Notes: generated by a model from the letters alone, not told the origin. DNA of 64,000 bases from Macrostomum lignano (GCA_002269645.1 NIVC01000103.1:124001-188000), one strand, 5' to 3'; numbered from the stretch's first letter, positions 5,263-45,349 are shown. Translations and numbers: made by a program.

Positions 5263-6256
5263 TAAAAAATTGCGGGACACTAGACCTCCCTCCACATTCG
5301 GTCTCTGAGTAGGCGGGGGCAGTGGACCTCCCTCCACATTCGGTCTCTGAGTAGGCGGGGGCAGTGGACCTCCCTCCACATTCGGTCTCTGAGTAGGCGG
5401 GGGCAGTGGACCTCCCTCCACATTCGGTCTCTGAGTAGGCGGGGGCAGTGGACCTCCCTCCACATTCGGTCTCTGAGTAGGCGGGGGCAGTGGACCTCCC
5501 TCCACATTCGGTCTCTGAGAAGGGGGGGCAGTGGAGCTCCCTCCACATTCGGTCTCTAAGTAGGCGGGGGCAGTGGACCTCCCTCCACATTCGGTCTCTG
5601 AGTAGGCGGGGGCAGTGGACCTCCCTCCACATCTGGTCTCTGAGTAGGGCGGGGGCAGTGGACCTCCCTCCACATTTGGGCTCTGAGTAAGGCATGGGCA
5701 GTGGACCTCCCTCCACATTCGGTCTCTGAGTAGGCGGGGGCAGTGGACCTCCCTCCACATTCGGTCTCTGAGTAGGCGGGGGCAGTGGACCTCCCTTCAC
5801 AGTCGGGCTCTGAGTAGGGCGGGGGCAGTGGACCTCCTTTCACAGTCGGGCTCTGAGTAGGGCGGGGGCAGTGGACCTCCCTTCACATTCGGTCTCTGAG
5901 TAGGCGGGGGCAGTGGACCTCCCTTCACAGTCGAGCTCTGAGTAGGGCGGGGGCAGTGGACCTCCCTTAACATTTGGGCTCTGAGTAAGGCGGGGGCAGT
6001 GGACCTCCCTTCACATTCGAGCTCTGAGTAGGGCGGGGGCAGTGGACCTCCCTCCACATTCGGTCTCTGAGTAGGCGGGGGCAGTGGACCTCCCTTCACA
6101 GTCGGGCTCTGAGTAGGGCGGGGGCAGTGGACCTCCCTCCACATTCGGTCTCTGAGTAGGGCGGGGGCAGTGGACCTCCCTTCCCATTTGGGCTCTGAGT
6201 AAGGCGGGGGCAGTGGACCTCCCTCCACATTCGTGCTCTGAGTAGGGCGGGGACTT
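5263..6256. repeat. GC-rich minisatellite, 42-bp unit (gacctccctccacattcggtctctgagtaggcgggggcagtg)
   Basis: Tandem copies; the 14-aa periodicity MWREVHCPRLLRDR in the ORF track equals 42 bp. Confidence 0.97.
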
Positions 6257-6331
6257 CCCTGCATAGAAGGTTGTCCAAAATACCTTCGACAAAACCTTCT
6301 CATAGAAAGTTCATTTTGCACTTTCAGCACA

Positions 6332-6376
6332 ATGCAGCATCAGCATCATCACCATCAGTCTGTTTGGCCGCCGCCG

Positions 6377-6410
<34 letters not shown>

Positions 6411-6562
6411 CCACGATGGCTGAACTGCGGCGATGCCAGCAGCGAAGGCAGTCGTGCAGAGACGCCAGTCGCGACCGAGACTTCATGGTGGACCGGGAGC
6501 GCGCGCAGGCGGTCGCCAGTCAGACTTTGCCAGCACCGGCTTCAAGCTCTGGCGGCGCGGTT
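6332..6562 (+). CDS. Candidate first coding exon (His/poly-Pro-rich, 77 aa), possibly the 5' exon of the M13-like gene
   Basis: Acceptor tttgcactttcag lies just before the ATG at 6332; the segment is GC-rich and exon-like; a phase-0 donor GTT|GTAAGC at 6563 is compatible with the phase-0 acceptor at 11797. The linkage is inferred only. Confidence 0.4.
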
Positions 6563-16244: not shown

Positions 16245-18922
16245 CCCTTCTACACTGCAGTGAGCCCCGCTACCCTCCTTCACTGTAGCTTCAGAGAGAA
16301 CCGCTGCCCTCCTTCACTGTAGCTTCAGTGAGAATCGCTACCCTCCCTCATTTCAGCTTCAGTGAGCCCCGCTACCCTCCTTCACTGTAGCTTCAGTGAG
16401 AACCGCTACCCTCCTTCACTGTAGCTTCAGAGAGAACCGCTGCCCTCCTTCACTGTAGCTTCAGTGAGCCTCGCTACCCTCCTTCACTGTAGCTTCAGTG
16501 AGAACCACTACCCTCCTTCACTGTAGCTTCAGTGAGAACCGCTACCCTCCTTCACTGTAGCTTCAGTGAGAACCGCTACCCTCCTTCACTGTAGCTTCAG
16601 TGAGAACCGCTACCCTCCTTCACTGTAGCTTCAGTGAGCCTCGCTACCCTCCTTCACTGTAGCTTCAGTGAGAACCACTACCCTCCTTCACTGTAGCTTC
16701 AGTGAGAACCGCTACCCTCCTTCACTGTAGCTTCAGTAAACACTGCTACCCTCCTTCACTGCAGCTTCAGTAATCACTGCTACCCTCCTTCACTGTAGCT
16801 TCAGAGAGAACCACTGCCCTCCTTCACTGTAGCTTCAGTGAGAACCGCTACCCTCCTTCACTGTAGCTTCAGTAATCACTGCTACCCTCCTTCACTGTAG
16901 CTTCAGTGAGAACCGCTACCCTCCTTCACTGTACCTTCAGTGAGAACCGCTACCCTCCTTCACTGTAGCTTCAGTAATCACTGCTACCCTCCTTCGCTGT
17001 AGCTTCGGTGAGAACCGCTACCCTCCTTCACTGTAGCTTCAGAGAGAACCGCTGCCCTCCTTCACTTTAGCTTCAGAGAGAACCGCTGCCCTCCTTCACT
17101 GTAGCTTCAGTGAGAACCGCTACCCTCCTTCACTGTAGCTTCAGTAAGCACTGCTACCCTCCTTCACTGCAGCTTCAGTGAGAACCGCTACCCTCCTTTA
17201 CTGTAGCTTCAGTGAGAACCGCTACCCTCCTTCACTGTAGCTTCAGTGAGAACCGCTACCCTCCTTCACTGTAGTTTCAGAGAGAACCGCTACCCTCCTT
17301 CACTGCAGCTTCAGAGAGAACCGCTGCTCTCCTTCACTGTAGCTTCAGAGAGAACCGCTACCCTCCTTCACTGTAGCTTCAGTGAGAACCGCTACCCTCC
17401 TTCACTGTAGTTTCAGAGAGAACCGCTACCCTCCTTCACTGTAGCTTCAGTAAGCACTGCTACCCTCCTTCACTGCAGCTTCAGAGAGAACCGCTGCTCT
17501 CCTTCACTGTAGCTTCAGAGAGAACCGCTGCCCTCCTTCACTGTAGCTTCAGTGAGAACCGCTGCCCTCCTTCACTGCAGCTTCAGTGAGCCCCGCTACC
17601 CTCCTTCACCGCAGCTTTAGTGAGCCCCGCTACCCTCCTTCACTGCAGCTTTAGTGAGCCCGCTACCCTCCCTCATTGCAGCTTCAGTGAGCCCCGCTAC
17701 CCTCCTTCACTGTAGCTTCAGTAAGCACTGCTACCCTCCTTCACTGCAGCTTCCCATACCCCGCTACCCTCCCTCATTGCAGCTTCCCATACCCCGCTAC
17801 CCTCCTTCACTGTAGTTTCAGAGAGAACCGCTACCCTCCTTCACTGCAGCTTCAGAGAGAACCGCTGCTCTCCTTCACTGTAGCTTCAGAGAGAACCGCT
17901 GCCCTCCTTCACTGTAGCTTCAGTGAGAACCGCTACCCTCCTTCACTGTAGTTTCAGAGAGAACCGCTACCCTCCTTCACTGTAGCTTCAGTAAGCACTG
18001 CTACCCTCCTTCACTGCAGCTTCAGAGAGAACCGCTGCTCTCCTTCACTGTAGCTTCAGAGAGAACCGCTGCCCTCCTTCACTGTAGCTTCAGTGAGAAC
18101 CGCTGCCCTCCTTCACTGTAGTTTCAGAGAGAACCGCTACCCTCCTTCACTGTAGCTTCAGTAAGCACTGCTACCCTCCTTCACTGCAGCTTCAGAGAGA
18201 ACCGCTGCTCTCCTTCACTGTAGCTTCAGAGAGAACCGCTGCCCTCCTTCACTGTAGTTTCAGAGAGAACCGCTGCCCTCCTTCACCGCAGCTTCAGTGA
18301 GCCCCGCTACCCTCCTTCACTGCAGCTTTAGTGAGCCCCGCTACCCTCCCTCATTGCAGCTTCAGTAAGCACTGCTACCCTCCCTCACTGCAGCTTCAGT
18401 AAGCACCGCTACCCTCCTTCACTGCAGCTTCAGTGAGAACCGCTACCCTCCTTCACTGCAGCTTCAGTAAGCACTGCTACCCTCCCTCACTGCAGCTTCA
18501 GTAAGCACTGCTACCCTCCCTCACTGCAGCTTCAGTAAGCACCGCTACCCTCCTTCACTGCAGCTTCAGTGAGAACCGCTACCCTCCTTCACTGCAGCTT
18601 CAGTGAGAACCGCTACCCTCCTTCACTGCAGCTTCAGTAAGCACTGCTACCCTCCCTCACTGCAGCTTCAGTAAGCACTGCTACCCTCCCTCACTGCAGC
18701 TTCAGTAAGCACCGCTACCCTCCTTCACTGCAGCTTCAGTGAGAACCGCTACCCTCCTTCACTGCAGCTTCAGTGAGAACCGCTACCCTCCTTCACTGCA
18801 GCTTCAGTAAGCACTGCTACCCTCCCTCATTGCAGCTTCAGTAAGCACTGCTACCCTCCCTCATTGCAGCTTCAGTAAGCACTGCTACCCTCCCTCACTG
18901 CAGCTTCCCATACCCCGCTACC
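16245..18922. repeat. 2.7-kb minisatellite, 34-bp unit (ccgctaccctccttcactgtagcttcagtgagaa)
   Basis: Period 34; many units carry the hairpin TCACTG-tagctt-CAGTGA; there are no unique spacers. Confidence 0.97.
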
Positions 18923-19509
18923 CATATAACTCAGATTTTTCGCATTGGTAACTCTGACTTATCAGAAGCAATTACTGCAGGCATTGAGTAACTTCTTTGC
19001 ATATTTGTTATTGCATTAGCTTTGGGTGGACAGCTCAGCTGGCCTGTGTGAGTCACGCCTGTCATCTTCTTCCCAAAGTAAAGCCGAGTTATTTTCCCTT
19101 CCTCCCTAGGCTATACTCAGCGCAGTGGGGATATTTCTGGTGGGATTAGCGTACGTCTTCTTTTAGGGAATCGCTCTCTCGCGGGATGGCTTGAGAAAAA
19201 AATTCAACTGGCGAACCGACTTTAAGCAAGGAGAGAGGAGAGACAGGAAGAGACGGAAAATCAATCCGCAGAATGGGCAGAGTGGAGAGACAGACAGGGG
19301 GCAGATAAGGCCACTCTGCCCCCCCCCCTCCCCACTCGGTGTACACCAGGACGGCAAGACGGACGGACGGTTCTCGCTGACTAAGCCATGAACTGCGGTC
19401 GGATGAGGGGAGGAATGAGCACTTTATTTAAATAGCTCACCACTCTCCCGAGTGGACCAGTAAAGCAACACACAGTTGGCAGTCAGGAGGAGCTACAGAC
19501 CGGACAGCA

Positions 19510-20214
19510 ATGGATCCAGATGTGGACGAGCTGACAGCGGAGCTCACGAAGCTGTACGCCGAGCCGCAACCGCAGCTGCTGCTGCCGAACCCGCATCTGA
19601 CCAAGCGACAGTCCAGCACCGACAGCGGCGGCGGCGTCAGCGCCGGTCGCGGCTGCGAAGACGCCTTGGACGAGCTTGTCCGCGAGCTGCACGCCGAGAA
19701 CCAGCGGCTCCGGCAGCGGCTGAGGTCGGCGGAGGCGGAGCATGGGCACCGGGTGCGCTGCCTGGTGGACACGCTGGACAAGATGCAGAAGGAGGTGGCC
19801 GAGATGGCCACCAGAATGTCAGCGGCGGTCAAGCGGCCGAAGAGCGACTGCACCAACCAGTCGACGCCATCGTCGGCCGCCTGTTGTCACGGCCGCGACG
19901 GCGTCGGCCTGCAGACACGGAGACGCAGCCTGAGCATCGGCGAGGACTATCGGGAGCTGGCCTCGGCTCTGGCGCACGCATGCGAGGAACTCCGGGCTGA
20001 GAACGCCTGTCTGATGCAGCAGCTGCGGAGGCTGCGCTCGCACCAGCCGGCTGTGCCAAACAGTCGGGCAAGTCAACGCCGGCGGGAGCTGCGACGCTGC
20101 CAGGCCGAGGAGGAGCTCGCCGAGATGCGCGAAGAGCTGCACCGGCTTCGGGTGGCCGTGCTGGAGGCCAGCGTGCGGTTCCCCGGAGTCGAAGCGCTGC
20201 TGTTGAAGCCCTAG
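19510..20214 (+). CDS. Single-exon coiled-coil protein, 234 aa, family not recognised
   Basis: GC-rich ORF with coding-like codon usage, good ATG context, heptad-rich segments (LDELVRELHAENQRLRQRL; LRAENACLMQQLRRL), and an AT-rich TATA-like tatttaaata ~80 bp upstream. Confidence 0.65.
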   Translation: MDPDVDELTAELTKLYAEPQPQLLLPNPHLTKRQSSTDSGGGVSAGRGCEDALDELVRELHAENQRLRQRLRSAEAEHGHRVRCLVDTLDKMQKEVAEMATRMSAAVKRPKSDCTNQSTPSSAACCHGRDGVGLQTRRRSLSIGEDYRELASALAHACEELRAENACLMQQLRRLRSHQPAVPNSRASQRRRELRRCQAEEELAEMREELHRLRVAVLEASVRFPGVEALLLKP

Positions 20215-22009: not shown

Positions 22010-22618
22010 AGAGTAGCTTCTGTGAGTAGTTTCTGTGAGTAGCTTCTGTGAGTAGCTTCTGTGAGTAGTTTCTGTGAGTAGTTTCTATGAGTAGCTTCTG
22101 TGAGTAGCTTCTGTGAGTAGTTTCTGTGAGTAGTTTCTATGAGTAGCTTCTGTGAGTAGTTTCTGTGAGTAGTTTCTGTGAGTAGCTTCTGTGAGTAGTT
22201 TCTGTGAGTAGTTTCTGTGAGTAGTTTCTGTGAGTAGTTTCTGTGAGTAGCTTCTGTGAGTAGTTTCTGTGAGTAGTTTCTATGAGTAGCTTCTGTGAGT
22301 AGCTTCTGTGAGTAGTTTCTGTGAGTAGTTTCTATGAGTAGCTTCTGTGAGTAGTTTCTGTGAGTAGTTTCTGTGAGTAGTTTCTGTGAGTAGTTTCTGT
22401 GAGTAGTTTCTGTGAGTAGTTTCTATGAGTAGCTTCTGTGAGTAGTTTCTGTGAGTAGTTTCTATGAGTAGTTTCTGTGAGTAGTTTCTGTGAGTAGTTT
22501 CTATGAGTAGCTTCTGTGAGTAGCTTCTGTGAGTAGTTTCTGTGAGTAGTTTCTGTGAGTAGTTTCTATGAGTAGCTTCTGTGAGTAGTTTCTGTGAGTA
22601 GCTTCTGTGAGTAGTTTT
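22010..22618. repeat. Minisatellite, 13-bp unit (ctgtgagtagttt)
   Basis: Period 13 counted directly. Confidence 0.97.
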
Positions 22619-23059
22619 TGTGCTGAAAAATGAAAACCTACGCGTGTATTTACATATACACATATATTTACATACATTTACATGATATATATATATATAT
22701 CACGAGCCTTTCATCAAAATGAACACAGAACACCTACCCTAGGATGTACAGTACAGCAGGTTGCGTCTGTTTGACACTGCAACTGTACAACACAGATTTG
22801 TTGTTGCACATGTCTGGGTGGTTTGGTTTTTTGTATACCAGCCAGTATATTGTGAGCTTTCTCAAGCACACAATTACTCAAGACTGAGACTGAAGTTTAG
22901 TAATTGCTCGCTTTTCATTTCTATATTTAGACATTCGGTCAGAGTAATTGTATTTGGTGCCGTTTAAATGAATTTATATAGGCGTATACAAGTATATCGA
23001 AACTTGAAATCTAAAGCCCCCAGCTTATAAAACAGAGAACTTCATGTTTCTCCGCAACA

Positions 23060-25333
23060 ATGCACGATTCAGTTCGATATTTGTTCAGTGAGTTCGGCGT
23101 CGACCATTCCAGCCCTTATGCTGGGCAGCGAAGAGGCGGCGACTATTGGAAGATCAGACTGGCTCTGGGAGGAGCCGCCGTCAACTTGATCATCTTGGCG
23201 ATGTTTACCGCGCTCTTCTCCGTCACTTTAAACAGCCTGTACGAGGAGCAACGGCGGGGCCACTTTGTGAGCGCTTGGGTGCTCTGTTCCTTGGGGGGTT
23301 TTGGCCCTCTTTGGGAGTGAATCGCATGACAAGCATCTGGCTTACTAGAGCCATAAATTAATGTGACCCCGCGTAGGTAATCAAGCCATGAGGACGGCTC
23401 AAGCGTTGTCAGGGGGCTCCGGGCGTCCGTATTTAGCGGAGAGGCGTCACCGCCCATTCCGCTAACCTCTGGGGACCACGGGCAGCTCGGGCCGGAAGAG
23501 CCGGTGGTGCCGGTATCCGCAGCGCGGTCCTCCTCCGTAGAATGTTAAACTGGCCGCTCACTCGGTAGCTAGCAGACAAGGGGCTGTCACAGATGAAGTA
23601 CTCCGCATTCTCGACGCCGGAGAGGCAGAATGGGCATTCCTCACTGCTGATTCCCTCTAGAGGTAGCGGTGCCTAGCGAAGCAGTCCTCGTTACCTTAGA
23701 CGGCCATGGTTACCTGCCCTGATGTCCCGGCGGTTGAGTCCATGTATAGGGTCCTGTGGAGGGCGAAGGAAGGCACGGGATTGCCGGCAGTCGGGGGCAT
23801 TAGCCCACCTCTCCCTGTGCTTTGAAGCCACGCAGTTGTGACAACGACGATGGGGTTGGTGGAAAAAGACCCGGTCGAGCTAGCTGTGGCCATGCGATCG
23901 GCCAACCTTAGAGAGGTGGCCCGAGTGCCCATGGGATCCACTATAGGGACATCTTGCTGGGTCTAGATCGGGGAAGTCTGTGAGATTGTGGGTCTGGATG
24001 GCGGAAGTCTTTGTGAACTCGTGGGTCTGGATCAGGGAAGTCTTTGAGAGATCGTAGCTCTGGATTGGGGAAGTCTTTGTGAGATCATCTATGGGTCTGA
24101 GAGTCTTAGTCTGAGTTCCTAAGAAAATATTTTTATGCGCCTAGCAGCCTGACATATTGTAAGTACAGGTGCGAGAGAGACTTACGGAAAAAGCACCTAA
24201 TATTACTTTTGCTTTATTTCCTGGTAAATAACTTGAGTTATCCAATAATTTATCCGCAAGGTATCCCACCTGGCTATCGACACAAAATCACTAAAGCTGC
24301 CGTCCTGTCCAGCTGACAAAACTGCAGTAGGCATCAGCCACTTGCCCTGCCTGATGAAGAATGGCGACTACGTCACTTCATCCGGTATGCAGACACTATA
24401 GCTGATTTATTGCTGTAAAAGTACATCGTGTACATGTATCCAGGGTATAATCATTTAGCATCAATTAAAATGCAGCCATTTTCAGGGCAACATTAGCAAC
24501 CTGAAGAAGTGTCGCACAAGATATAAAACTTTCTACGAATTCCTTAATATTGAAAAATATTGAAAGCTGCACTAATGGCAGCTTTAGCTATTTAGCTCGG
24601 TGATGCACAACTAACTTTTCTTTGAACCCACTGTACGTACAGCATTCCAGTGACAAAATACAACAGTCTATCAGAGTATATGAATTCTGAAATCGCTAAA
24701 CCATGCAAAAAACCGCTCACCACGCACAGGCCCTCTGGGTCCCTGGAACTGCACTGGTGACGCTCATGCTCCTGATCGGCGCTGCCCTGCGCATGGCGAC
24801 GGCAAAGAGATCGTCGTACCTGAGCACGGTGTCTACCTGGTGGTGGCTCAGGTGATAGTTTCTTGATTCTATTAGACTCGTATTTGTTGTTTTTACTATA
24901 CTCGTAGTTGGGGTCTCTCAGATCTGTTAAATAATTCTGAACTTACAATTCAAGTAGCCTTGAAAGCCTTGAGCTCGTAAAAATAATAGTGCAAATATCG
25001 AGAATTCAAAAGCTCAAACATCAAGATTGATATGTCACGGATTTTAATTCCTACAACTCACAGATTGTGCTCGTTGACAGCCTGTCAACGCCAGCCAACC
25101 TGGTGCTGTCTGTCAATAACAAAGTCCGACGCGCCTGCGCTATAAACTCAACAAGCAGCAGCAGGGGCTCCGGCTGCTCAGTCAGCATGCTAGAAGAGCT
25201 TCGGAAGGGCGATCGGCTTACTGTAGGCCTGCCAGACGCCTATAGGCACATTTCTCCGCATAATACTCTCACCTACGTGGATTTGGCTCGATTGGGACGC
25301 TTAGGTGAACGATTGAGCAACAATTACTTGTAA
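23060..25333 (+). CDS. TNF-superfamily ligand, 4 exons: 23060-23266, 24261-24384, 24730-24851, 25064-25333 (240 aa)
   Basis: All junctions are GT-AG with matching phases (0,1,0), total 723 nt. Type [28 protein letters not shown]; THD motifs VSHL (AHL), [21 protein letters not shown] (LvVPxxGlYlIYsQVxF), [12 protein letters not shown] (fqLekGDrLsv), LTYVDLARL (tyFGxfxL). Confidence 0.8.
23340..23950 (-). mobile_element. Degenerate non-LTR retrotransposon (LINE) 3' fragment, antisense in TNF intron 1
   Basis: The minus strand encodes [12 protein letters not shown] followed, after a frameshift, by [25 protein letters not shown]. This resembles the C-terminal CCHC knuckle of LINE ORF2 (CPFCxxxxETxEHFLxxCP) and has stops. 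Confidence 0.6.
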
Positions 25334-29718: not shown

Positions 29719-31410
29719 ATGTCCACAGATGTTAAGCGAATTAAGCGCGGCGTCTCGCCAGGAGCTGACCCGTCCCGTGTCATTTTTGTGCGAGAGATTC
29801 AGTCCAACACTAGCGAGTACGAGTTGCAGCGCTCTTTCGAGAACTATGGCCGCGTCACGCAGGTGTTCCTCATGCCGCAGCGTCGACAAGCTCTCGTGGA
29901 GTTTGCCACTTTGCTCGAAGCCGAAGATCTTATCAGGCGTCAGAACGAAGGCGAAACAATCATTGTTCGCGAGATGCCCGTAGGTATTAGCTTTTCTAAG
30001 CAATCCCAGATTACAGAGCCAAAGAAGGAATATCTCGCCCACGAGCCGAGCAAGATCCTACTGTTTACTATCTTCAATGTTCGCGTAGATGTTGACTGTG
30101 AGACATTTAGGAAGATCTGCTCTTCATTCGGTCAATTGGAGCGAGTCACCCTCACTAAGAATGTCATGGATTCGCAGGCTATAGTGGAATTTTCCAGCGT
30201 CGAAGAAGCCGCCAAAGCCAAGCCTCAGCTGAATGGCGCCGATATCTACGCTAATTGCAACACGCTGCGCTGCGAATATGTCACGCCCGACGTCTTCAGA
30301 GTGGTGGTTCGCGATCCCCGCTGCGTTGTAGACGAGTGGCTGTCTGGTCGACAGACTACACCAATGATACCCGGACTGAATTCCATGCAGCCGCAGCAGC
30401 AACAGCAGATGTCAATGGATCCGCGTCGCGTAGCCCTATTCGACGGGCCGCCTCCTGTAGGCGGCGCTGGACTTGTCAACCGACGCGACGCCGCTTCGAT
30501 GCAACCCGCCGCGTCGGCTGGAGCTGCCGCGGCGCCTGGCGCTACAGCGGCCGTTGTCTCCGGCCTGCTTGGCCTGGCGTCGCAGCTCACGGCTCTGAAC
30601 GTGCCAGGTTTGGACGCGCAGGGCATTATTGAACGTTTGGCGCCACTCACTGGCCTGTTGCCGGATCAGCTGCAGCAAGGAGGCGTCGGTACCGGAGCCA
30701 CCGCGAACGTCGCCGCCGCTGCCGCCGCTACAAACCAGCGCAGCAACAATATCTTGTTTCTGTCTGGCCTTAGCGAGCGAATGAACTGCGACCGTCTGTT
30801 CAATGTGCTCTGTCTCTATGGCAATGTGCGCCGAATCAAATTCTTTGCCAGCACTCGTGGCCAAGCTATGGCCGAAATGTTAGATGGTAGGTCCGCCGAC
30901 GCTTGCGTTCACTATCTGCACAACTGCCAGCTGCTTGGTAAGCGTCTTATCGTCGATTATTCGCGTCAACGCCTTCTTAAAGACGTCCGCGACGCAATGC
31001 CGTTGCCAGACGGAACACCGTCTGTTAAAGAATTCGACATCTCCGGTCGGAATTGTCGCAATCGATTTCTAACGCCCGAGATGGTGAAAAAGAACAAGCC
31101 GATCGATCCGTCCTCCGTCGTGTACTTCTGGGGCTCGCAGCCGGAGGCCACGGAGCAGGACATTGCTCGAATGCTTGAAACGGCGGAGGCGCCTCAGCCG
31201 GAGAGGATCCAGTTTCTCAACAGCGAGAACAAAAGCGGCTTTCTATTCTTTACTAATCCGCGCGACGCTCTCGACGCAATTTGCATGGCGAATCATAGCG
31301 AACTGCCGCTGGGCGATCGCAACTGGCTAATCCGCATGTCGTTCTCGCTTAGCAAGGACGGCGGCGCTTCTGCCCAGCGCGGCGCTAAACGAATGCATAT
31401 TGACGAATAA
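29719..31410 (+). CDS. HNRNPL: hnRNP L-family RNA-binding protein (4 RRMs), intronless, 563 aa (copy A)
   Basis: PSRVIFVREI...RQALVEF (RRM1); KILLFTIFN...QAIVEF...LNGADIYANCNTLRCEY (RRM2); MNCDRLFNVLCLYGNVRRIKF (RRM3); PSSVVYFW (RRM4). These are hallmark hnRNP L/LL motifs. Confidence 0.93.
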   Translation: MSTDVKRIKRGVSPGADPSRVIFVREIQSNTSEYELQRSFENYGRVTQVFLMPQRRQALVEFATLLEAEDLIRRQNEGETIIVREMPVGISFSKQSQITEPKKEYLAHEPSKILLFTIFNVRVDVDCETFRKICSSFGQLERVTLTKNVMDSQAIVEFSSVEEAAKAKPQLNGADIYANCNTLRCEYVTPDVFRVVVRDPRCVVDEWLSGRQTTPMIPGLNSMQPQQQQQMSMDPRRVALFDGPPPVGGAGLVNRRDAASMQPAASAGAAAAPGATAAVVSGLLGLASQLTALNVPGLDAQGIIERLAPLTGLLPDQLQQGGVGTGATANVAAAAAATNQRSNNILFLSGLSERMNCDRLFNVLCLYGNVRRIKFFASTRGQAMAEMLDGRSADACVHYLHNCQLLGKRLIVDYSRQRLLKDVRDAMPLPDGTPSVKEFDISGRNCRNRFLTPEMVKKNKPIDPSSVVYFWGSQPEATEQDIARMLETAEAPQPERIQFLNSENKSGFLFFTNPRDALDAICMANHSELPLGDRNWLIRMSFSLSKDGGASAQRGAKRMHIDE

Positions 31411-44000: not shown

Positions 44001-45349
44001 TCGTCCCACAACGATTCCGCTGACGCAGGCACACGCTCCTACAGGGTGTCACTCTGTGTGCCCCCGGGGGTTGGCCCTCCTGAGTCAGGGAGGTCCAGAG
44101 CGGTTCCAGTTTGATTTCAATTCCTTCAACGCCAAAGAGACGCCTCACCGCCGCTGCTGGTGTCAGCCTCCGGCTCGGCGAACCCCAGCACCTGCTCAAC
44201 GCTGGGCAGTCGGGCCTGCAGCATGCTGTCCACCACGGCCAGCTGCAGCCGGTGCGTCCTCTCGGCCGCCATCCGGCACAGCCAGAAGAACCTCCTGGAC
44301 GTCAGCACGAACAGTCGACAGGCGGACGTGGCCGTCACGCAGATTCGCTCCTCCCGGCCGGTGCTGATGCACTCGAGGCCCCAGCAGTCCAGCTCGAGAA
44401 GGCGCTGCTCGACCACCCGCCTGTGCTGATCGCCGCTCAGCTGGCGATGCAGCAGCTGCCCGCTGGCGACGAAAAAGAAGCTGCGGTTTCTGTCCTTCTG
44501 ACCGCAGATCTGCTCGTTTGACTCGCCCTGGTGTGGCAAGGAAATTCAAGTTTTATGCTAAATTGTGAGTCCTCTTTTGGGTTCAGAATAGGTTGTTGAG
44601 CTCATTTTTGAGTTCCGTGTCTATTTGAGTTGACCGTGTCTTTTTTGAGTTGACCGTGTCTTTTTGAGTTGACCGTGTCTTTTTGAGTTGACCGTGTCTT
44701 TTTGAGTTGACCGTGTCTATTTGAGTTCCGTGTCTTTTTGAGTTCCGTGTCTTTTTGAGTTCCGTGTCTATTTGAGTTCCGTGTCAAATCAAATCAAAAA
44801 GACACACGGAACTCAAAAAGACACGGAACTCAAAAAGACACGGAACTCAAAGACACGGAACTCAAATAGACACGGAACTCAAAAAGACACGGAACTCAAA
44901 GACACGGAACTCAAAAAGACACGGAACTCAAAGACACGGAACTCAAAAAGACACGGAACTCAAAGACACGGAACTCAAATAGACACGGAACTCAAATAGA
45001 CACGGAACTCAAAAAGACACTGAACTCAAAAAGACACGGAACTCAAAAAGACATGGAACTCAAACAGACACGAAACTCAAAACTTTCCCAGAACTTTGCT
45101 ACTTGAAAGAGTGACCCAATAGAAGTTCAGCTCTAAACCAGCAAATGAACTCACCAGCCTCTCGAACATGTAGCAGACGAACTCCATGATCTCCTCGTTG
45201 CTCCGACCGCAGAACGGGCGCAGTTGCGACAGCGCTTTGTGCACCTTCAACTTGTCCATCTCAGACTTCACAAAGCTGCCAGTCTCGTCCTGTGCTCTCT
45301 CCTCCGTGAGCCCAGCTGTGTCTGGCAGCTTGATTGCTTTGCGCTGCAT
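41009..45349 (-). CDS. Cyclic-nucleotide-binding-domain protein, multi-exon: ~45349-45155, 44527-44149, unresolved exon ~44079/44038-43903, ~42746-42360, ~41205-41009
   Basis: EQICGQKDRNRSFFFVASGQL...WGLECIS...RICVTATSACRLFVLTSRRFFWL fits the cNMP-binding fold pattern (I.qGd..dsfyfi.sG.v ... fGe.al ... r.atv.a.t.c.l..l.r..F). GT-AG sites flank each GC-rich block. The phase of exon 3 cannot be resolved. Confidence 0.6.
41222..42300. repeat. Intronic minisatellite, 34-bp unit (ccatctattcatctcacactccatctgatctcct)
   Basis: Period 34; degenerates toward 42300. Confidence 0.95.
42793..43902. repeat. Intronic minisatellite, 15-bp unit (gagtgtccataggat)
   Basis: MDTHP / GHSSY / WTLIL ORF periodicity. 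Confidence 0.97.
44605..45081. repeat. Foldback satellite: (tttttgagttccgtgtc)n, a 10-bp spacer, then the reverse-complement array (gacacggaactcaaaaa)n
   Basis: Left arm 44605-44785, spacer aaatcaaatc, right arm 44796-45081. Confidence 0.92.

Follow-up and report, generated by a model that had tools for sequence, protein, structure and literature searches.

Does a stretch of flatworm DNA in which a plain scan for open reading frames (ORFs) shows only two short pieces hold a complete gene, and to which protein family would its product belong? The question is raised by positions 23060-25333 on the plus strand of a 64,000-nt segment of the Macrostomum lignano genome (GCA_002269645.1, NIVC01000103.1:124001-188000), referred to below as the window. 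An original prediction had proposed that these positions encode a spliced ligand of the TNF superfamily in a probably regenerating flatworm, which M. lignano is. It is very probable that BOX15_Mlig023812g1, the gene at this locus, consists of four exons and encodes a 240-residue type II membrane protein with a TNF homology domain (THD) at about residues 70-228, that it belongs to the six-cysteine TNF-ligand family of flatworms, and that it forms a separate, older paralogue lineage of this family together with Mlig030723g1 and a fragment from Microdalyellia ruebushi.

A Four-Exon Gene Behind Two Fragments

Without splicing, the ORF list shows only the two ends of the gene, 23060-23320 (86 residues) and 25067-25333 (88 residues), as had been noted at the outset. 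When the segments 23060-23266, 24261-24384, 24730-24851 and 25064-25333 are joined as proposed, 723 nt read in frame from the ATG at 23060 to the TAA at 25331-25333 and give an uninterrupted 240-residue protein. All three introns have GT at the 5' end and AG at the 3' end. The parts of the gene are the following, where the second copy is the duplicate described further below.

23060..23266 (+): exon 1, codons 1-69, ending in phase 0; short predicted cytoplasmic tail, transmembrane helix at about residues 34-57 and start of the stalk; 96.6% identical to the second copy, with 0 indels.
23267..24260 (+): intron 1, 994 nt, GT..AG; holds a GC-rich block and a tandem repeat.
24261..24384 (+): exon 2, 124 nt, codons 70-110 plus 1 nt, ending in phase 1; strand A (SHLAID) and the first cysteine pair (C85/C99); 96.8% identical to the second copy; intron boundaries with the phases of the paralogue Mlig009154g1 and at positions within one codon.
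24385..24729 (+): intron 2, 345 nt, GT..AG; 89.5% identical to the second copy, with gaps in 23% of aligned columns.
24730..24851 (+): exon 3, 122 nt, to codon 151, ending in phase 0; LGPWNC...RRC (C118, C129), the N117 sequon, strands B and C.
24852..25063 (+): intron 3, 212 nt, GT..AG.
25064..25333 (+): exon 4, with codons 152-240 and the TAA stop; THD strands D to H, C176/C189, the N179 sequon and a 12-residue C-terminal tail; 98.5% identical to the second copy; AlphaFold2 (AF2) strands 144-229 at a predicted local distance difference test score (pLDDT) of 65-83.

The protein is the same, at 100% identity over 100% of its length, as GenBank PAA90785.1 / UniProt A0A1I8G1C2 (BOX15_Mlig023812g1, “hypothetical protein”), and the public gene call at NIVC01000103.1:147060-149333 has a span identical to that of the four-exon model. 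The annotation of the Mlig_3_7 assembly rests on RNA-seq, for which StringTie, TACO and a de novo transcriptome were used (PMC5730564). Because the coding sequence is identical to this RNA-seq-derived annotation, it is implied, by way of the annotation and not of the reads themselves, that transcripts use the three junctions; the original prediction had staked itself on these junctions, and they are those of the public model. The four exons are a real M. lignano gene. The locus had been called cryptic and unannotated, and this description holds for its function, which had not been named; the identical coding sequence already stood in GenBank as a hypothetical protein, so the gene was cryptic solely to an ORF scanner. 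The UniRef name “Hemagglutinin glycoprotein”, which is attached to the entry of this protein (P0001, UniRef100_A0A1I8G1C2), is backed by no search and was set aside.

The cluster at 90% identity has a second member, PAA69215.1 (Mlig030723g1), encoded on NIVC01001340.1. The same PTB/hnRNP-L-like gene with RRM-type domains lies downstream there, which makes Mlig030723g1 a syntenic duplicate, and such a second copy fits the known redundancy of the assembly (PMC5730564). The exons of the two copies are 96.6-98.5% identical and differ in length only by two 3-bp in-frame indels, and all splice sites are retained. The introns show 89.5-94% identity, with gaps in 20-23% of the aligned columns of introns 1 and 2.

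Sequence Evidence for a TNF Ligand

The series of TNF motifs quoted in the original prediction is present in the protein, apart from “AHL”, which is in fact SHL at residues 71-73. CPADK is found at residue 85, HLPC at 96, WNC at 116, RRC at 127, the VPxxGvYlv.aQ motif at 140, LRKGDRL at 197 and TYVDLARL at 221. The proposed check against Pfam TNF (PF00229) returned a TNF match at residues 133-208, although a sub-threshold one (E = 0.0012, 19.2 bits), and a search of the PDB with the single sequence gave an APRIL/BAFF fusion as its sole match (E = 0.0025).

Closer relatives connect the protein to the family more strongly. An exhaustive phmmer scan, which covered 1.84 billion representatives, matched P0003 at E = 2.1e-11 (residues 72-228), as well as P0005, P0006 and P0009, and the E-values to the TNF paralogues of M. 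lignano ranged from 2e-11 to 1e-5. Three of these proteins, P0003, P0005 and P0006, exceed the Pfam TNF gathering score, with 24.7, 28.5 and 31.2 bits, respectively. By cluster lookup, P0003 and P0005 are M. lignano proteins; P0006 lies on an M. lignano scaffold and its sequence is the same as that of Mlig009154g1 of PMC7519573, while P0009 comes from a Logan assembly. In UniProt, P0003 is named “TNF_2 domain-containing protein”, and A0A1I8G1C2 is without a TNF name. The word-indexed homologue search returned nothing beyond the protein itself, whether it was started from the single sequence or from the family alignment.

The profile searches point in the same direction. A profile of 10 family sequences matched APRIL/BAFF (1e-27), EDA (1.4e-9), APRIL (2.4e-8), BAFF (5e-7), TWEAK (6e-4), lymphotoxin-alpha (7e-4) and TNF (4e-3) in the PDB. 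As a control, a profile was made of the subclade of Mlig023812g1 only, with the Pfam-positive paralogues left out; it still matched only TNF ligands, namely APRIL/BAFF at 2e-6, 6i50 as the second-best match at 8e-4 and APRIL at 0.04. The title of PDB entry 6i50 is that of the Eiger TNF from S. frugiperda.

The architecture of the gene is also shared. The intron phases are 0, 1, 0 both in Mlig023812g1 and in Mlig009154g1, the one paralogue compared. Intron 3 is exactly homologous to the third intron of that gene (GVYLVVAQ/IVLVD versus GIYRIYGQ/VSFKD, with the slash at the junction), and introns 1 and 2 lie within one codon of their counterparts, in the indel-rich stalk and loop regions. By way of profiles and paralogues, the sequence places Mlig023812g1 in the TNF superfamily. 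The assignment as a TNF ligand is firm because four independent lines support it: transitive homology, profiles, gene architecture and fold. The proposal of a divergent type II ligand of this superfamily is thus borne out by the Pfam-positive paralogues, by PDB profile matches to TNF ligands only, and by the single transmembrane helix with its positive-inside bias.

Several other sequences came up beside these. Among the phmmer matches, P0007 is a multi-THD/C1q protein from an ENA assembly, and P0004, a repeat protein of bacterial origin that bears a Por secretion tail, was rejected as spurious. P0008 (UniRef100_A0A1I8FJ61) is an 88-residue frame-shifted M. lignano fragment of the same gene family. 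Its name, “DUF1612 domain-containing protein”, looks wrong; Pfam finds no family in it, and no search backs the name.

A Six-Cysteine Family and a Separate Lineage

The flatworm TNF ligands, when aligned, share C118, C129, C176 and C189 without exception, and C85, C99, L113 and G114 are conserved at ≥90%. The cysteine loops (CPADK...HLPC and WNC...RRC) had been interpreted as insertions specific to this gene. This interpretation has to be given up, as the cysteines are conserved across flatworm TNF ligands; being invariant or nearly so, the six together form a framework that is a signature of the family. Mlig023812g1 has this framework along with the “HLxID” and “LGPxxC” motifs of the flatworm ligands. 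In addition, C176 and C189 fall in the same alignment columns as the two cysteines of strands E and F in APRIL, BAFF, EDA and 6i50. Possession of the E-F pair defines the “EF-disulfide” subgroup of ligands, which bind small atypical receptors (10.1101/444554), and the alignment indicates that Mlig023812g1 carries the defining pair.

What sets the lineage apart is that about 7-9 residues are deleted at the position of the “xFHLxG” of the paralogues and that Asp224 (TYVDL) stands in strand H, where canonical ligands have Gly. The replacement of the conserved C-terminal Gly had been pointed out correctly in the original prediction. Microdalyellia ruebushi seq1, which is 48% identical to Mlig023812g1 (blastp 1e-33), shares both the deletion and the Asp. 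In a neighbor-joining tree, Mlig023812g1, its second copy and M. ruebushi seq1 form a clade in 198 of 200 bootstraps, and the two Microdalyellia fragments of PMC7519573 belong to this lineage. One sequence, labeled “M_fusca” (an SRR1797774 read, Data S3 of PMC7519573), is a 33-residue stretch from Microdalyellia fusca; its identity to the M. lignano gene amounts to 74-76%, versus only 48% for the congeneric M. ruebushi sequence. This high identity may reflect a very conserved stretch or a run cross-contaminated with a Macrostomum.

The lineage has to be seen against what had already been published. Bertevello et al. (2020; PMC7519573) described TNF ligands from free-living flatworms, ten of them M. 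lignano sequences that fall into three paralogue groups, and one M. lignano TNFR that carries a death domain. Their screen required PF00229 at E<1e-10 and was followed by tBLASTn. The Mlig023812g1 protein is not among the ten M. lignano sequences of their FASTA file and table. A later preprint (10.1101/2024.07.27.603686) puts the Eiger-like proteins of M. lignano at 6, the Wengen-like ones at 16 and the Grindelwald-like ones at 1. Neither the indexed papers nor the supplements of PMC7519573 contain the identifiers Mlig023812, Mlig030723, A0A1I8G1C2 and PAA90785; the identifier table of the preprint lay outside this search. What is new is therefore limited: a function for a public hypothetical protein and an extra paralogue lineage in a family already published for M. 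lignano.

A further M. lignano “hypothetical protein”, P0005 (PAA91604.1/PAA91666.1, BOX15_Mlig007928g2; cluster-mate PAA82150.1, Mlig013244g2), is the one that scores 28.5 bits against Pfam TNF. It is not in the list of M. lignano TNF ligands of PMC7519573, and its branch in the neighbor-joining tree lies outside the three published groups. When Mlig007928g2 is counted, the number of TNF-ligand lineages in M. lignano seems to rise to at least five.

Predicted Topology and Fold

The hydropathy profile (Kyte-Doolittle, 19-residue window) has its maximum of 2.19 at residues 34-57, which mark a single hydrophobic helix, and no N-terminal signal-like segment is present. The flanking charge is +3 on the N side and 0 on the C side, which points to a type II orientation. 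The six cysteines and both N-X-S/T sequons (N117, N179) all lie C-terminal to the helix. Together, these features indicate a predicted type II membrane topology with an extracellular C-terminal domain. The stalk from the membrane to strand A (SHLAID, residues 71-76) comprises only about 14 residues. No furin site (R-X-[KR]-R) occurs anywhere in the 240-residue protein, and the sole dibasic site of the stalk is E-Q-R-R at 63-66.

The fold was modeled with AF2 from a six-sequence alignment; AlphaFold with the single sequence gave a pLDDT of 39.5 and was not used. The model has a mean pLDDT of 57.5, with the C-terminal strands (residues 137-229) at 65-83, and a helix at residues 29-66. Foldseek returned 289 PDB matches at E<=1e-3, and the best 50 of the 289 are all C1q/TNF jelly rolls, whose TMt ranges from 0.46 to 0.71, barring one multi-domain entry. 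Cbln1/4, GITRL, TL1A, Eiger, EDA, CD40L, TRAIL, APRIL and TWEAK are among the matches listed. A match to the TNF/C1q jelly roll, on which the original prediction had also staked itself, was thus found both with the PDB profiles and with Foldseek. The C-terminal sheet is supported by AF2 and Foldseek, and the modeling evidence falls short of a full ten-strand fold.

Weighing the Alternatives

Several points weigh against the reading of Mlig023812g1 as a TNF ligand. The direct Pfam TNF score of 19.2 bits is below the curated cutoff of 23. Support at the transcript level is indirect, as it comes by way of the public annotation. AF2 is only moderately confident, and most of the N-terminal half of the ectodomain (residues 60-135) has a pLDDT of <50. 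The long Foldseek alignments have root-mean-square deviations of 8-10 Å, and by fold alone the C1q domains of cerebellins marginally outscore TNF ligands. The lost “xFHLxG” and the Asp in place of the strand-H Gly might alter or abolish the canonical trimer or the receptor geometry. Finally, purifying selection is not strongly demonstrated, because the ratio of nonsynonymous to synonymous rates (dN/dS) between the copies, 0.56, was calculated from only 19 substitutions, of which 12 are nonsynonymous and 7 synonymous; this value is compatible with mild constraint, and the changes are too few to decide.

The same ratio is what a very improbable alternative draws upon, namely that the gene is a decaying duplicate that is transcribed and no longer a functional ligand. 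Decay would also account for the loss of a segment that the paralogues keep, for the change of the strand-H Gly to Asp and for the score under the Pfam cutoff. Nevertheless, both copies have an intact ORF, all splice sites, the six cysteines and only in-frame indels, and the deletion and the Asp are common to a Microdalyellia sequence at 48% identity. Because they are shared at this distance, the two features are old and retained in a lineage whose reading frame has stayed open across a deep flatworm divergence, and not marks of recent decay.

It is very improbable that the protein is a C1q-domain protein (cerebellin or C1q-like), a proposal which arises because both families share the jelly-roll fold. 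The top Foldseek matches are the C1q domains of Cbln1 and Cbln4 (E about 4e-6, TMt 0.63-0.70), slightly above the TNF ligands. However, Pfam C1q (PF00386) gives no match at E<=10, at which TNF alone is listed, and the PDB sequence and profile matches are all TNF ligands, with 0 C1q chains. The protein has a type II anchor and neither a collagen-like Gly-X-Y stalk nor a signal peptide. Its E-F cysteine pair aligns with that of APRIL, BAFF and EDA, and its closest paralogues exceed the Pfam TNF cutoff. C1q and TNF domains are not separable here by fold alone; it is the sequence evidence that separates them, because a C1q signal is wholly absent.

That the four exons are ORF fragments strung together by chance, without a real gene behind them, as might be thought from the two short ORFs visible without splicing and from the shortness of exons 2 and 3 (124 and 122 nt), has next to no probability and is refuted by the exact full-length match to the transcript-derived public model, by the structure kept in the second copy and by intron positions common to a paralogue, to which the GC content of 50-58% in exons versus mostly 35-40% in intron sequence can be added.

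Comparison with Known Ligands

With a TNF ligand as the preferred reading, it can be asked how Mlig023812g1 relates to ligands that are already known. The M. lignano ligands of PMC7519573 (Mlig009154g1, the 48272/5508 type and the 6798/13079 type) are of the same species and family. They have in common with it the type II anchor, the “HLxID” of strand A, the six cysteines, G-x-Y in strand C, R-x-GD, the Thr of strand H, and intron phases and positions. Nevertheless, Mlig023812g1 is only 24-31% identical to them. It is without “xFHLxG”, has TYVDL where they have TFWG, and, unlike them, carries the 12-residue C-terminal tail, falls below the Pfam TNF cutoff and sits in a separate clade with M. 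ruebushi seq1.

The closest relatives with a characterised structure are the EF-disulfide ligands APRIL (TNFSF13), BAFF (TNFSF13B), EDA and TWEAK, together with the Spodoptera protein of 6i50. The four vertebrate ligands are the best PDB sequence and profile matches and have the type II topology in common with the flatworm protein. The identity to the EF-disulfide subgroup in the structural alignments of Foldseek is about 16-20%. The vertebrate ligands APRIL, BAFF, EDA and TWEAK are typically processed by furin to a soluble form; unlike in these ligands, the stalk of Mlig023812g1 is without the furin site R-X-K/R-R. The flatworm protein has an extra region of about 45 residues with four cysteines between strands A and B, and a collagen domain is present in EDA and absent from Mlig023812g1.

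Among invertebrates, the Eiger proteins of insects (Drosophila; Spodoptera frugiperda, 6i50) are likewise type II TNF ligands. The E-F cysteines of 6i50 are aligned in the subclade profile match, and the entry is also found among the Foldseek matches. Eiger has a long stalk and is without the N-terminal four-cysteine framework of Mlig023812g1. The similarity is distant, short of an established orthology. The C1q proteins (cerebellins, C1QL, adiponectin), as top Foldseek matches, belong to the same class of 10-strand jelly-roll folds. They have a signal peptide and a collagen or cysteine-containing N-terminal region where Mlig023812g1 has a membrane anchor, and no C1q sequence signal is present in the latter.

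Surroundings of the Gene

Within intron 1, an approximately 800-nt block (about 23280-24100) with 58-63% GC stands out from an otherwise AT-rich intron and ends in a tandem repeat of 33 bp x4 at 23958-24086. The duplicate locus keeps the block, as intron 1 is 94% identical between the copies with 21% of aligned columns gapped. No Rfam match, no ORF of >92 residues and no further copy within the window were found for it. Possible identities of the block are the remains of a transposon, a regulatory element and a non-coding transcript.

Repeats also occur upstream of the gene. At 22011-22622, a 13-bp unit (GAGTAGTTTCTGT) is repeated x47 at 93% match with a strong GC skew; about 440 bp separate the end of the array from the start codon downstream, and the minus strand of the array reads as a spurious repetitive ORF of 127 residues. 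At about 16255-18900 of the window there is a long tandem array whose step is about 34 bp. The duplicate locus (L002) has only about 340 bp (6154-6495) of this array, so its length is very different between the copies.

The upstream neighbor, at 19432-20214 (+), is called as a 260-residue protein in which no Pfam family is found above cutoff and which gives only weak coiled-coil or leucine-zipper-like matches. Downstream, 29719-31410 (+) encodes a single-exon, PTB/hnRNP-L-like protein of 563 residues with four RRM-type domains (RRM_5, RRM_1, RRM_occluded, RRM_8). This RRM gene follows the TNF gene in both copies (18555-20246 in L002), and in L002 a second RRM gene, for 584 residues, stands in tandem from 21854. 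The sole Rfam match above the gathering score in the window is a mir-3492 microRNA precursor at 44756-44832 (+), which scores 46.6 bits where the cutoff is 44 (E = 9e-7).

Possible Function and Significance

How might such a ligand act? By homology with other TNF ligands, the ectodomain would form a homotrimeric jelly roll at the cell surface. The stalk, short at about 14 residues and free of furin sites, suggests that the ligand acts in a juxtacrine manner or is shed by a protease other than furin; it would probably stay membrane-bound or be released in the latter way. It may cluster the cysteine-rich receptors of the TNFR family that have been reported in M. lignano (PMC7519573; 10.1101/2024.07.27.603686), and engagement of these receptors could lead to TRAF/JNK/NF-kB or death-domain signaling. 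A role in wounding or immunity, which had also been suggested for this gene, is speculation, as would be one in regeneration.

A more far-reaching view can be put forward only tentatively, and it is rather doubtful. Mlig023812g1 and its Microdalyellia relative may be a distinct ancient lineage, marked by the loss of “xFHLxG” and the strand-H change of Gly to Asp and missed by the published catalogue, that could pair with a different class of receptor and serve a function of its own, such as wound or regeneration signaling. Because of its affinity to EF-disulfide ligands, which bind small atypical receptors, a small Grindelwald-like receptor, as opposed to an NGFR/Wengen-like one, is a candidate partner. 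The lineage is older than the split of Macrostomida and Rhabdocoela, provided that the Microdalyellia fragment is genuine.

With this “hypothetical protein” recognized as a TNF ligand, the known repertoire of M. lignano gains a lineage; this is an incremental gain in annotation and not a new kind of system. The case also shows that screens based on Pfam thresholds under-count the TNF-ligand family. Parasitic flatworms have kept a TNF receptor and lost the ligand, and the ancestral set of ligands can be studied in free-living flatworms (PMC7519573). M. lignano is a regeneration model that is transgenic and amenable to RNA interference, and the pairing of ligand and receptor, as well as a role in wounding or regeneration, is therefore directly testable in this animal.

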